This document shows positions 34,330-41,100 of a stretch of 64,000 bases of DNA, piece after piece. The notes under the pieces are model-generated. The model searched no databases. It was not told where the DNA came from and saw only the letters and a list, made by a program, of their open reading frames with translations. The position numbers and the translations under genes are program-made. Each line of letters starts with the position of its first letter. The stretch's first letter is position 1. Source of the stretch: Dimorphilus gyrociliatus. Taxonomy: Eukaryota > Animalia > Annelida. The stretch spans positions 806,001 to 870,000 of the forward strand of contig CAJFCJ010000015.1 of the NCBI GenBank assembly GCA_904063045.1, given 5' to 3'.

Positions 34330-36738
34330 ATGGGCTCTTCATTCTTAGAAGAAGATCTTAAAGATATCAAATGGAGTGATCAACTAGCTAGACCTCATGA
34401 TTTAATAGGTTTAACCTGTCCAATGTATATCTTGGTAGAGAATGGAGGTGACGCTGATTTAGGATTAGAAAAAGGACAGGTATTCATGGCTTTCTACTCT
34501 TAAAAAAATTTTGTAGGCCTTTGTAATAACTTTGTAAACTATTGTACAGGCAAATTTTCCATTTACGTATGATCTATATACTATATATACAGCATATCGA
34601 ATATATCCCTATGTTTTCTACTAGATAATCCGGATAGACAGCTGGGACAAGCAAAAGAGGATAATCATTAAGGATAAGCGTAACAGATATGTATCAGTAC
34701 CACGTGACTTTCCGATGAAATTTCTAGTTCGAAATATTCAAGAAAGCTCACTGAAGAATAATCGTCGAGGTATAATATTTGTTTAGTAATAAATATAGGA
34801 TTTAAGGTTCAACTTGAAAAATTTCATGTATACAGCATTAAAGCCATGTCCCAGCACTAAGCTGTATCATATAATTAAAAGCTTTTTTACTGGTAAGCGA
34901 CTAGAAGTTGAATTTGACTATTTCGATCCCTGGATTTTTCGGGTCGGTGGCGAACAAACAAATAGTAGAGATTATGGTTCAATTTACATTGAAAATTTGG
35001 AAACTCCAAACGGTTGTTTTGGACCTCTGGTTACAGAGCATTTCCTGAAAGGATTTTTTATTTTAAAACGTAATATTTTTTTTATTACGTAATAATTACT
35101 TAACTAAATTAACTTTCTCTCCTTTCCTTTGTTCTTCTTCTAGAAAATACCTTCTTAAACATATCAAAATTTGCTATTATACCAACGACAACCAACATTA
35201 TGTTAAAAGTGGCGGACGGTTTTGAAAACGACGAAAATGGTCTTCGTTGGAGGTCGTTTTGTTCTACCCACTCGAAGACTTTAGCGAGGACGCTAAAGTC
35301 GGATTGGTTTAAATTACCTGGCACGTTAGGTATGCATTCTCCCACACAATATTTATATACATATATTTGTATATAACAATTGCATAAAAAGTACTTTTTT
35401 TATATGTAAACTTATTGATTTTAGATATTTTGTTGCCTCATATATCAACACTTACGTCGAATAGCCTATACACTGACAACGACAATACGGTATTTGATGA
35501 AAATGGTAACAACGAATCAACTTTAACAAGGAATTCAAATTATGATCAGAAAGTGTTCAATTATCATGAAACTCATAATTATCATGATAGAAATAGGCAA
35601 AATGTTCATAACGACGAAGCGGCTAATGAATTAGCTGTTCTCACTATCGAAAGCGAACGAATTTGCGTAGACGATACCGACGGTAGAAATGTGGGAAATG
35701 GACAAATAAGAAAGAATTTTCAGGCTGAAATTCATAATACAAAAAGTTCCAATTATAAAAATGTTGTAACTTCCTCTAAGGCCAATGGAATGAATTCTAA
35801 AGATGTTTATAGGCCTACAACTGATCGAGGAGTAAACACGGAAGAAATGGCCAATGAAAGTAAAATGGGTAAAATACATACTTCGAACATAGTTGTTGAG
35901 AATAGGATGGAATCCGCAACATTGCCGAGATATGTACAGAAGAATAACGTTCCTCCTCTTCAAACCACTTATGCTACTTTGCCTAAACAGCAAGTACTCG
36001 GCATTCCTCAACAACAATACCAATATCAATCCAACCAATACCTAGTTCAATCACCTGCACAATTAACACCAAGCCCGAGTCTGAATACTCTATATGTACT
36101 GAAACCGATTCAAATATTACAGAATCCCGTACAAACGGTGCAGATGGGCCCATATCAATCTCCAGCACCCATGCCTATACCACTTTCTTCGCCAAATCCG
36201 AGAGAGAATGGGGCGGAGACTTTTATTCAACACTCGACTCCAAGAGTGAAAGAAATCGTAAAAAAATCCTCTGGTTCTGGAACGAGACCCCGACGTTCGG
36301 TATAATTTTAAATTCGCTTGTTTAACGACATTGACAAAATAATTTTTAATAAGGTTAAACAAATTTAACTTTTCTTTTAAGGAGAAAACAAGACGACAAT
36401 TGGAAGTAAAGCACGTGAAAACAAGTTCGAGATTTGATAGAGGGAAAGACGAGGTAGATCGTCCGAGAATTATTCACCTAAGTGAAAGTAGTTCCAAATT
36501 AGCAAGATCTCCTCCTCCTCAACCTAAAGATGAATTACCCTCGCCTATCTACGATCCTAGACACGAGGCAGATATTGCGAGCGATAGGATAAAAAAGGCC
36601 GAGGAGAGAGTGGGCAAGGCATATAAACGGTTAGACTCAACTGGGTCAGTGAGGTCGTTGCGACAAGTGATGACAATGAAATCTGAGAAAGATTCTGATA
36701 GTTTTGTGGACGCTGATGATCGGAATATTGATTTTTAA
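34330..36738 (+). CDS. Uncharacterised protein with a CABIT-like N-terminus (GAREM/THEMIS-type) and a long disordered Q/P-rich C-terminus, 6 exons
   Basis: Exons join in frame via GT-AG: MGSSFLEEDLKDIKWSDQ...LEKGQ | IIRIDSWDKQKRIIIKDKRNRYVSVPRDFPMKFLV | ORF 34814 part | ~35144-35329 | ORF 35415 | ORF 36400. The CABIT resemblance is by eye only (confidence about 0.45 for the domain call). Confidence 0.7.
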
Positions 36739-36910
36739 TATACTTTAAATGTTCCACTTTCCTATCGCTTATAGCATTATCATTATTATTGTTATTATTA
36801 TATAGTCTTCTTCTTTTTCTTCTTCTTCCTCTCCTTTATTTTATACCCTTAAGAGCATTCTAAATCTTAAAAATTTAGACAATGTTTTTTACACTTTAAT
36901 ATAATGAAAC

Positions 36911-36923
36911 TAGCGCCATCTAT
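36911..36923 (-). promoter_or_regulatory. CTCF-like motif TAGCGCCATCTAT, 90-100 nt upstream of the racemase ATG; identical 13-mer at 13091-13103
   Basis: Exact 13-nt repeat at two intergenic sites; its reverse complement contains TAGATGGCGC, the invertebrate CTCF core. Confidence 0.55.
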
Positions 36924-37012
36924 CGATTCTGCAGATAAGATTTCTTTTTTAATATTATTCAAAGTTTGTGCCTGTAGTAGTGAAGAATTTAAAGGAAATA
37001 CAAAACAAGAAA

Positions 37013-38020
37013 ATGTCGTTATCTAAATCTTTTCTTATTAAAACAATAGAAATGCATACGGGTGGTGAACCTGTAAGAATCATTAAAATGGGTATTCCAG
37101 AACCCCATGGTTCAACTATACTTGAAAAAAGGAAGTTTATGAAGGAGTTTTACGACGATTATAGAAAATATCTTATGTTTGAACCAAGAGGTCATTCAGA
37201 CATGTATGGAGCCCTCTTAGTTAAACCTAATCACCCTGACGCCGATTTGGGAGTACTTTTTATGCACAACGAGGGCTATAGCACTATGTGTGGTCATGCA
37301 ACAATCGCTCTTGCCCGTTACGCAGTTGACGAGGGTTTAGTGAGCGTTTCCGAAAGTGGATTTACCCCAGTCAGTATAGAGTGTCCTTGTGGTCTTGTAA
37401 ATGCATTCTATGATAAAAACAGTGGAAGGTCGTCATTCATTAGTGTGCCAGCTTTCCTTTACGAACAGGATGTCGTAGTGCCCGTTGGAGGTTCTATTGG
37501 AGATGTAAAAGTTGACATCAGCTACGGTGGAGCTTTCTACGCTCTAGTTAATTATTCTTCTCTAAATTTGACACCGGAAACAGCAAATACTGAACAAGTA
37601 CGTGCTCTAGGCACAACGATAACCAATTATCTTCGCCAAAACTATAAGGTTACTCATCCGGAAGAAGACGATTTAAGTTTCATCTATGGTACCATTATTA
37701 TCGATACTTTATCAGAAAACAAGTCTACGTCTAATGTTTGTATATTCGCCGAATCAAGTATTGATAGATCCCCATGTGGTAGTGGAGTAACGGCTAGAAT
37801 CGCTTGTTTGGTGGCAAAAGAAAATATAGGTCTAAAAGAGGCTGTAATTTTTCGCAATAGTCTGACAAAGAGCGAAATGATAGGACAAGCTATAGAACGA
37901 ATGAAGTGTGGTAAATTCGAAGCTGTAAGGGTAAAGGTTGAAGGGCGTGGTTTTTATAGTGGACGCTGCGAATTCCAATTAGAAGACGATGATTTACTTG
38001 GAAAAGGTTTTCTTATATAA
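37013..38020 (+). CDS. Proline racemase family enzyme (L3HYPDH-like), single exon, Cys/Cys active site
   Basis: IEMHTGGEPVRI, LMFEPRGHSDMYGALL, FMHNEGYSTMCGH, VDISYGGAFYA and IDRSPCGSG motifs; uninterrupted ORF. The first ATG is at 37013; the ORF track starts at an upstream GTG. Confidence 0.93.
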   Translation: MSLSKSFLIKTIEMHTGGEPVRIIKMGIPEPHGSTILEKRKFMKEFYDDYRKYLMFEPRGHSDMYGALLVKPNHPDADLGVLFMHNEGYSTMCGHATIALARYAVDEGLVSVSESGFTPVSIECPCGLVNAFYDKNSGRSSFISVPAFLYEQDVVVPVGGSIGDVKVDISYGGAFYALVNYSSLNLTPETANTEQVRALGTTITNYLRQNYKVTHPEEDDLSFIYGTIIIDTLSENKSTSNVCIFAESSIDRSPCGSGVTARIACLVAKENIGLKEAVIFRNSLTKSEMIGQAIERMKCGKFEAVRVKVEGRGFYSGRCEFQLEDDDLLGKGFLI

Positions 38021-38123
38021 ATAGAGTATATTAATATAGAGATGCTTGTATATACTTTCTTTTCATATAAAACACAATTATGTTTGTCATAATTAAAATA
38101 ATAACAAGTTTTAATAAAAGCAG

Positions 38124-41100
38124 TTATTCGTGGAAAGAAACTTGAGTTGTTTGCTTTTGTTTTTTGTCAATTGGCTTTAATTCTTCTGTATCTTCGATCT
38201 CTTCAACCATTAAATTCGGATCATGAAATTCTAAATTAAGTAGATCATTAGCGAAATAATGAGCGTCTATTTCTTCGGGCAAATAATTTTCCATAAAATC
38301 TCCACCGACATCGGGATCGATAGGATTCGCCTCGCATCTGGCACCTTCTGCTGCCCCTCCTAATAAAGTAACGAAACATTCTACTATTTCCATTTCCGTC
38401 ATATGCTCTCCTCTCTTTTGCAATAAATCGATAAGACGACGGCGAGCTATTGATTCATTTTCGTCCTCTAATTTTTGAAATGAATTTAATAGGGAGTTCG
38501 CTTCTACCCCGAAAGCTGGTCTATGATTGACGTATACTGAAGAAAAAAATACAGAGATTACAAGTTTAAACGTCTATTTAAAAGAGATTAGACGCTTACG
38601 TAGTATAAAGTCTTCGAGTGAGCATCTCTCCTTATATTTTCCAGTTTCGACATACATACTATATTTTAATTCGTTAACCATATCCTCTATCTGCTGTTCA
38701 GTTGGAAAGAATCCCATTGCTCTCATTACGTATGGTATCTCTGATAAGGGTATTGTATCTGTTATCTTTCTCCTTTCCATCTTATTAATTCCTTCTCTAT
38801 AAACCATAATCAGTTAATTAATAGAATATAGTTGTTAGTCTGATTAACCTACCCTCTAATCTGTGCATAGTAGAAATAATCTTCAAGTTCCTTAAACAAC
38901 TGACCTTCTCGTCCACCGTCAATTAAACCGTAGAACGGATCCAGGTGCTCTCCACCTAATAATAGCTGAGCTTCACAAGCGCTTTATAAAGAGGAAGTAA
39001 TTAGTTAAAATGCTGCAGTAAATGATAGGCTTTCCTTACTCGTAATTCACTCTCCACATGTGAACTATCATATCTTCACCGCCGCATGAAAAGATGTATT
39101 TCCCATCCATACTATAGCAAAAATCGTGGACTCCGTGCGGGTGGGCAACAACAGCCATTGCTTTATGAGGATTACCGTCTAAAGGAACAATATGAATACC
39201 TAATTTATCGGAGGACATAAAAGTCATAAATCTCGAATCTGGCAACAATTTCATCCTTTCAACAGGCGACCCAAATGTGGGTGCTAATATCGTTTTACGG
39301 CACATTTTAGTGGTGACATTATATAACTTGAATTTGAACTGGTCGTTTGCGGTAACAAAGAATCTTTCTTTTGTAACCGGAGCATATTCAGTTAAACAAA
39401 GAGCCCTTGCATCCTGTTCAATCTTATCTATACTAAGGATCTTTAAATCGTCCCTTTTACTATTTTCAAGATCATATTCCACCAATCTTCTATCCATTCC
39501 TAAAGTAAATAATCGCGCCTCATTTTTATCAGGATGTTCGGCAAACATGATATCGGCAACGGGTTTTTGGTGAGCTCTATATCGTCCAATTAATTTATAA
39601 GGCGACTCTTGAACATGTGTTGCTTTTAGAACAGTTGTTGTATAATTAATATCTATACAAGCAAGATAAGATCCATCCAAAGCAAATGCCACCTTTGTTA
39701 TTTGGCATTTGCAAAGACGCAATTTATCCGCGCTAGCATCGTCCAAGCTACTTGATTCAATTAGTCTTACATAACCAGTGGCAAATCCCAAAGCTTTTTA
39801 ATAACAATCCTATTAATTATTATGCAAATTATTATTGATTTTGCTAACAACTTACCAATCAAATGACCTTTAGGGTGAAAGGCCATACATTTAATTGCGG
39901 GGTTACTTCCCTTAAATTGACGACTAAGTACAACTTTTCTGTTTTGTTGAGTCGATTATTTCGATTATTAAGAATTTTTAATAAATTTAATTAGGTTAAT
40001 TACTTTGTCTCGTAGTCCCACACTTTTAAAAGGCCGGAATCGCACGCTGCGGCTATGTAAGGCCTATAAAAAATGAATAATAATTTATAATAATACTTAT
40101 ACTCTTTAATTTTCGTTTTTTTTTACATTTTCGGGTGAGTAGCTATAGCTCTAATATCCGTTTCGGCCTCTTTAGATATTACTCTTAACTTTGATCCTTC
40201 CGCCTCTACCATACCCATATATCCTGAGTAGGTGGAAATGGAAAAATCTCTTGTTTTGAATTTTCTTGCAGCTATTGTTGCATCCGGAGGAAAGTTGCCA
40301 AGAGGCTCAGCACTGTGATAAAGATGTATACACATATATTTAAAAATAAACAAAATGGACGATTGCAAATATTTCTACAGGTAGGTATCAAGAGAAATCT
40401 AAGTGAATGAAATGATACAAATAGGCCTTTAAAATGATCTTTTAGCAAATTGCACTTTTACAACTTAATATATGTATATAGGTGATACAATAGAATAATA
40501 AGCCATCAATCTAAATAAAAAATTGAATAAATTATAGAAAATCATAAAAAATGTGAATAAATTACAATAATAAATCATGTGCTCATGAATATTGCTAAAT
40601 TATCTTCCTTTTTCTTTACTATTTTTTATACATTAAGTGTAATTTTGAGTGCGTTTCACAAATAGCTTTACTGCTTTTGATTGTTTGTTTAACTTACGGT
40701 TCTTTTTCTTTTCCGAAAAATACTTTACTGAATTAAAATATGATTATTATACATATTTAAATGATATGTTAATATATGTAAATCTCTTAGTTATGCTAAC
40801 TACACATAGTAAATTAATTTATTTCTTTATATTATACTTACTATCTTTCATCTTCAGGATCGCTATTGAATAATAAAAAATAAGAATAGATAATATATAC
40901 AGGTAGATATTTATAACTTACAATACTTTAAAATCTGGTGAATATGCAAATGAGAGAGATAATATGGGACCCAATTCGAAATTCGAATACCACATCATTA
41001 GCTTCATGTTATTATCGAAAAATTTCACATGACCAGCCTGATCTCCAATAACAATAAATCTGGATAGAATTATAGGGAAAAAGATGTCATGAATGGATTA

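Follow-up and report, generated by a model that had tools for sequence, protein, structure and literature searches.

Racemases and epimerases of the Pro_racemase superfamily work with two opposed acid/base residues, a two-Cys pair that carries out 1,1-proton transfer, and throughout the superfamily the catalytic residues lie at helix N-termini (PMC4113996). The dehydratases instead carry a non-catalytic Thr in place of the second Cys; for the syn-dehydration of trans-3-hydroxy-L-proline (T3LHyp) one base is enough, its conjugate acid assisting loss of the 3-hydroxyl, whereas epimerisation needs two (PMC4113996). Both reactions are carried out by some members in which two residues are catalytic. 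The Cys/Cys pair is found in the proline racemases (ProR) of T. cruzi and Acetoanaerobium (1W61, 7PB3), in the bifunctional Thermococcus litoralis ProR/HypE (6J7C) and in bacterial 4-hydroxyproline epimerases (4J9X, 2AZP), and the Cys/Thr pair in human L3HYPDH and in the archaeal T3LHyp dehydratase of T. litoralis (6R76/6R77). Moreover, the passage of PMC3958920 that cites Visser 2012 describes a Thr-to-Cys mutant of the human enzyme that gains T3LHyp epimerase activity.

Within the window (the whole stretch of 64,000 nucleotides that was analysed) lies a gene of this family from a worm, in which the two catalytic positions are both Cys. An earlier, sequence-only reading had made this claim, and both TGT codons were re-read exactly as it gave them. 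The features of the gene are as follows.

37013 to 38020, + strand: L3HYPDH-like gene of the Pro_racemase family (ORF, Pfam PF05544, match to human 7qpo, AlphaFold model)
37286 to 37297, + strand: MCGH motif with Cys93 (TGT 37289-37291), invariant in a 15-sequence alignment
37763 to 37786, + strand: DRSPCGSG motif with Cys255 (TGT 37775-37777), read directly; the Thr of the dehydratases is replaced
38113 to 38118, + strand: AATAAA, a putative polyadenylation signal 93 nt past the stop, proposed from sequence only

Direct reading gives an intact ORF of 335 aa on the + strand, from ATG at 37013 to a TAA ending at 38020. The database gene model (P0001, 322 aa) begins 13 codons downstream, at Met14 (window 37013-37051 being the part left out). 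Position 37013 is probably the likelier start, because the first 13 codons, including the MSLSK N-terminus, are conserved in a related species. A chance ORF was ruled out by the match to Pfam PF05544 (Pro_racemase) over residues 12-333 (E 3.9e-93, 312.5 bits against a cutoff of 27), which covers profile positions 2-324 of 325.

Among solved structures the best match is human L3HYPDH (7qpo; E 1.8e-96, ~50% identity over the full length), in agreement with the earlier assignment to animal L3HYPDH-like proteins; the Cys/Cys pair is genuine. The AlphaFold model (pLDDT 87.6) has the pseudo-symmetric two-domain alpha/beta fold, with TM scores of 0.86-0.91 to 6r76, 7qpo and 1w61; its best folds are 6r76 and 7qpo (TM ~0.9). 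In the model, Cys93 and Cys255 lie at the N-termini of two central helices. Cys93, directly ahead of helix 94-106, is the predicted conserved general base, and helix 256-268 begins right after Cys255. In the alignment to 7qpo, Cys255 faces the human Thr of DRSPTGSG (Thr273). Therefore the Cys-Thr catalytic pair of the dehydratases is absent and the Cys-Cys pair of proline racemase proper (EC 5.1.1.4) is present.

Apart from residue 255, the aligned pocket is that of human L3HYPDH: Tyr65, His95, Tyr225, Phe245, Asp251 and Arg252, with Tyr65 corresponding to human Tyr76 and Tyr225 to human Tyr241, the two tyrosines named in PMC9309405. The human enzyme shares further the MCGH motif, the fold (TM 0.90) and the CPCG cysteine, the partner of the catalytic Cys in the open form of the human enzyme; it differs in Thr273, and the worm gene is intronless and carries replacements at near-invariant sites. 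The T. litoralis dehydratase is the top Foldseek match (E 1.3e-42, TM 0.89, 42% identity) and has the HNEGYSTMCGH block also seen in the worm, but is archaeal and Cys/Thr. The Cys/Cys racemases and epimerases share the fold and the opposed cysteines at two helix N-termini, and the 1,1-proton transfer that they perform would be possible in the worm enzyme; however, they are only 23-34% identical and belong to other superfamily branches. ProR has Phe for Tyr65 (the aligned DMFG of A. sticklandii ProR), and PMC4364671 reports Phe at this position, ligand site 1, as peculiar to ProR-like enzymes. HypE has His at site 4 and Cys/Tyr at site 5; in the worm, site 5 is Phe245 and not the Cys/Tyr of 4-hydroxyproline 2-epimerases, while the mapping of site 4 is uncertain.

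Of the NCBIfam models, the T3LHyp dehydratase model NF045511 comes first with 321 bits against a cutoff of 540. All six further members of the family that were scanned, from a frog, a shark, a scallop, an annelid and two bacteria, score 335-372 bits and likewise stay below this cutoff, and the worm's score below it is therefore uninformative. The proline-racemase model NF010576 scores below the dehydratase model (264.7 bits, cutoff 556), and the models for 4-hydroxyproline 2-epimerase (EC 5.1.1.8) were missed (NF010578, 228 bits against 376; NF052296, 147 against 450; NF010577, 135 against 442).

In a dehydratase, the first Cys (here Cys93) would take the alpha-proton of T3LHyp and its conjugate acid would help the 3-hydroxyl to leave, with an inert Thr on the opposite face. 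In the worm, Cys255 stands in place of this Thr and could deliver a proton to the enolate intermediate from that face, which would make the enzyme a natural counterpart of the human Thr273Cys mutant. Because there are two cysteines in an L3HYPDH-type pocket and the human Thr-to-Cys mutant is a T3LHyp epimerase, we infer, with confidence about evenly divided for and against, that the worm protein interconverts T3LHyp and cis-3-hydroxy-D-proline, that is, acts as a 3-hydroxyproline 2-epimerase, possibly with residual dehydration; both outcome and substrate belong to this prediction. The engineered enzyme offers the closest comparison, a single-residue difference on the same scaffold (PMC3958920, in its citation of Visser 2012), although that is a laboratory mutant and the worm gene a natural one under purifying selection.

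The sequence-only reading had predicted a true racemase/epimerase. The Cys/Cys pair, in an intact and transcribed gene under purifying selection, speaks for that prediction, but the pocket is of L3HYPDH and not of proline racemase type. Its statement that the human mutant gains racemase activity does not agree with the passage of PMC3958920, in which the activity gained is T3LHyp epimerase. Of the two products that it envisaged, D-proline and D-hydroxyproline, the latter is favoured: with Tyr65 rather than Phe and an L3HYPDH-type pocket, cis-3-hydroxy-D-proline is the likelier product. The use of Cys/Cys as a racemase/epimerase signature holds in so far as the pair is employed in this way by known enzymes; however, it is compatible with dehydration, which needs the first Cys only. 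Given the bifunctional members of the superfamily, the partition between epimerisation and dehydration is not readable from sequence. Moreover, replacements at near-invariant sites, namely G101A, V133Y, V140S, A200G, L224I, T230I (within the YGTILTDG block), G232T and F289M, are common to the worm and a related worm species; across 235 other members of the family, conservation in these columns is 94-99.6%. Such shared replacements predate the Cys switch, and T230I, G232T, F289M and others could alter specificity beyond what the human enzyme predicts.

The related species provides the closest comparison for the switch itself. Among the matches listed, the nearest database protein (P0002; 335 aa, 83% identical) is encoded by an intronless gene from Logan assemblies of another sample set, and the two loci are collinear over ~10 kb (window 33.5-43.4 kb against L002 1-10.6 kb). 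The relative has DRSPTGSG with codon ACC (Thr), against TGT here. Between the worm gene and this syntenic orthologue dN/dS is 0.083 and dS ~1.3; the two worms belong to different species, and purifying selection acts on both genes. Since Thr is present in the syntenic orthologue, in bacteria and in most animals, Cys is the derived state in this worm, and the switch is a recent one. The pair is a clean natural experiment: two proteins 83% identical, at one locus, differing in a catalytic residue. A third, closer relative was also seen (run X6), in which the upstream gene has 86-92% nucleotide identity, against 78-83% for L002, and different intron sequences; its contig matches 35201-37131, ending inside the enzyme gene and short of codon 255.

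How far Cys/Cys is spread among invertebrates had been left as a question by the sequence-only reading; the form proves to be widespread in animals and the worm is not singular. The best 120 matches of the worm protein comprise 104 with Thr, 14 with Cys and none with Ser at the second catalytic position. Extending these matches by two further word searches gave 237 L3HYPDH-type sequences (194 Thr, 43 Cys, 0 Ser). Cys is present in all eight of the cartilaginous fishes (sharks, rays, skate, sawfish and the chimaera Callorhinchus) and in every named bivalve sampled (scallops, oysters, mussels, clams, a unionid and Solemya). It is found further in the gastropods Patella and Haliotis asinina, in the echinoderms Lytechinus and Holothuria, and in two cnidarian-like metagenomic sequences and a teleost-like one. 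These animal proteins belong to the same subfamily and have the same DRSPCGSG motif as the worm protein, but stem from independent switches on the tree and are 49-53% identical to it. All are automatically annotated as dehydratases. Solemya velum has two adjacent Cys/Cys copies on one chromosome (P0003, P0006; locus tags 014074, 014073), one of them a 560-aa model whose score resembles that of a tandem or fused duplicate.

On an IQ-TREE phylogeny of 75 sequences, built after removal of the trait column, there are 11 changes of state (bootstrap range 11-11), 10 of which are forced by well-supported branches. At least 10 independent Thr/Cys switches are thus required on this tree. An ancient, distinct clade of animal Cys/Cys paralogues was rejected, as the Cys forms are scattered over these 11 changes. 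No second paralogue, with Cys/Thr, was seen for this worm among the best 120 matches listed per protein search, a search that the sequence-only reading had proposed. Across 10 independent Cys/Thr pairs, no alignment column changes consistently as a compensating second site would. A change from Thr to Cys takes at least two nucleotide substitutions and passes through Ser, which is absent from all 237 sequences; a recurrent switch of this kind, with no Ser intermediate, looks like a selected functional toggle.

The alternative that survives best is that the enzyme is still a dehydratase, in which Cys255 is tolerated and near-neutral and the role, recycling of collagen-derived 3-hydroxyproline to proline, is unchanged. 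The first Cys alone suffices for dehydration (PMC4113996), the remaining pocket is unchanged and bifunctional enzymes exist; no acceleration is seen on either branch of the worm pair (0.10 against 0.13). Some Cys/Thr flips are also very shallow: Haliotis asinina has Cys where H. cracherodii has Thr, and one Thr form nests among Cys-bearing clams in the tree. Flips as shallow as that within Haliotis could equally mean that Cys and Thr are nearly interchangeable in vivo. Neutral drift, however, sits poorly with two or more nucleotide changes per switch and a Ser intermediate never sampled, whole clades are fixed for Cys, and the engineered human enzyme is described as an epimerase where PMC3958920 cites it. 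We therefore consider an unchanged dehydratase somewhat unlikely. As an observation apart, the two Haliotis proteins (P0132, P0062) have 45 differences and may be orthologues or paralogues.

Returning to epimerisation, the worm gene represents a naturally occurring Cys/Cys form within a known enzyme family and is one of many in animals. As one instance of a wider pattern, its value lies mainly in the Thr-bearing orthologue at the same locus. Our tentative proposal, to which we give a little less than even credence, is that animals turned 3-hydroxyproline dehydratase into 3-hydroxyproline 2-epimerase at least 10 times, with fixation in cartilaginous fishes and bivalves and a recent switch in this worm. 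The residue that decides between dehydration and epimerisation, according to mutagenesis, differs in roughly one in five of the sequences sampled. If the Cys/Cys forms are epimerases, the annotation of hundreds of genes would be wrong, and animals would have an enzymatic D-hydroxyproline route that is on no pathway map. An unrecognised metabolism of D-hydroxyproline (or D-proline) would then be hidden behind dehydratase annotations. Our literature search, which did not extend to Visser 2012 itself, found no paper on natural Cys/Cys L3HYPDH forms in animals, and these appear never to have been characterised.

A different question is where the gene came from. Horizontal transfer from a marine alphaproteobacterium into the worm lineage would account for its lack of introns in both worm species, among neighbours with many short introns, and for its strong divergence. 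The phylogeny sets the worm pair on a long branch beside Sneathiella-like bacteria (88/91), outside the bilaterian clade (99/94). However, AU tests reject neither a placement of the pair with animals (p 0.72) nor one with bilaterians (p 0.25), and the very long stem (0.98-1.45) makes long-branch attraction likely. In identity, bacteria (51-53%) are no closer to the pair than animals (49-51%). The indel patterns are mixed on the whole, and two of them speak against transfer: the worm protein lacks a one-residue deletion near column 313 that is common to five alphaproteobacterial-type rows, having the animal-length form, and shares a deletion of 4-5 residues near column 155 with the annelid Owenia. 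Retroposition or intron loss would give an intronless gene too. Transfer is hence doubtful and in our judgement unlikely, although transfer, retroposition and rapid evolution with loss of introns are all compatible with the data, and the functional inference is the same under each.

Marine alphaproteobacteria (Kiloniella, Sneathiella and a MarineAlpha bin) do carry L3HYPDH-type proteins (P0010, P0017, P0018, P0025, P0232 and others). The Owenia protein has ~66% identity to metagenome rows labelled 'proline racemase' and ~64% to the MarineAlpha bin. In the trees, bacterial L3HYPDH-type sequences interleave with cnidarian and bilaterian ones, a hint of inter-domain transfer at some point in the history of the family.

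With regard to function, a broad proline racemase/hydroxyproline epimerase making free D-proline would resemble the bifunctional T. litoralis ProR, in which one Cys/Cys active site accepts proline, 3-Hyp and 4-Hyp. The Cys/Cys pair is consistent with such an activity, as is Phe245, where proline racemases also carry Phe. Site 1, however, is Tyr65 as in L3HYPDH and not the ProR-specific Phe (PMC4364671), the ProR structures are only 33-34% identical, and the NCBIfam proline-racemase model (265 bits, cutoff 556) ranks under the dehydratase model; we regard a broad racemase as decidedly improbable.

The 3-hydroxyproline 2-epimerase that we favour is encoded by a transcribed gene. Contigs of four public runs were compared with window 35200-40200. 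Run X1 dates from 2017, and its study and organism label differ from those of the assembly's likely source. Its contig of 5221 nt skips GT..AG introns at 35325-35421 and 36298-36381 in the upstream + strand gene, and CT..AC introns at 38536-38600, 38796-38853, 38981-39040 and 39793-39856 in the downstream - strand gene, and is therefore RNA-derived. The features around the enzyme gene are as follows.

36381 to 36738, + strand: last exon of the upstream, intron-bearing neighbour (GT..AG joints; ORF 36400-36738; collinear with the related worm locus)
36839 to 38536, no strand assigned: stretch spanned without a joint by the spliced, RNA-derived X1 contig (contig alignment)
38124 to 38536, - strand: last exon of the convergent downstream neighbour (CT..AC joints; ORFs; collinear with the related worm locus)
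39039 to 39791, - strand: WD40 exon belonging to the downstream neighbour or to the following minus-strand gene (weak Pfam matches of THOC3-, WDR- and EML-like type)

Over 36839-38536 the X1 contig is unbroken and has 0 letters differing from the window, and the enzyme gene is thus transcribed and, as first read, intronless among intron-rich neighbours. The contig is chimeric over three genes and shows presence of RNA and lack of splicing, not transcript ends or expression level. The source DNA contig (X2) is identical to the window at the gene. The sequence-only reading had named ACN at 37775 as evidence that would count against it; no read or contig examined, RNA-derived or DNA, has ACN at this position, and the codon is TGT in both the X1 and the X2 contig. 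That the second Cys is a sequencing or assembly error, or the gene a dead copy, has a negligible probability, given that the source DNA contig and the independent RNA-derived contig are identical, that TGT differs from the relative's ACC at three of three codon positions, and that the ORF is intact with dN/dS 0.083. A pseudogene was rejected on the latter two grounds. Contamination was likewise rejected, the gene being contiguous with spliced neighbours in both DNA and RNA contigs and in ~10 kb synteny with the related species.

Run X10 (2024), which bears the species label of the likely source, matches almost nothing of 35200-40200 at >=85% likeness, giving short spurious pieces; a wrong label, a cryptic species or a different kind of library may be the reason. 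The neighbouring exons were searched singly, and the last exon of the upstream neighbour gave no Pfam match. The WD40 exon at 39039-39791 keeps ~90% amino-acid identity in the related species. A CT-rich low-complexity stretch (36769-36838) lies between the stop of the upstream gene and the enzyme gene. The X1 contig crosses the upstream + strand gene, the enzyme gene and the convergent - strand gene, thus three genes on both strands. Since the stop codons of the enzyme gene and its convergent neighbour are only ~100 nt apart and one contig runs over all three genes, the transcripts or their UTRs overlap in this compact genome.
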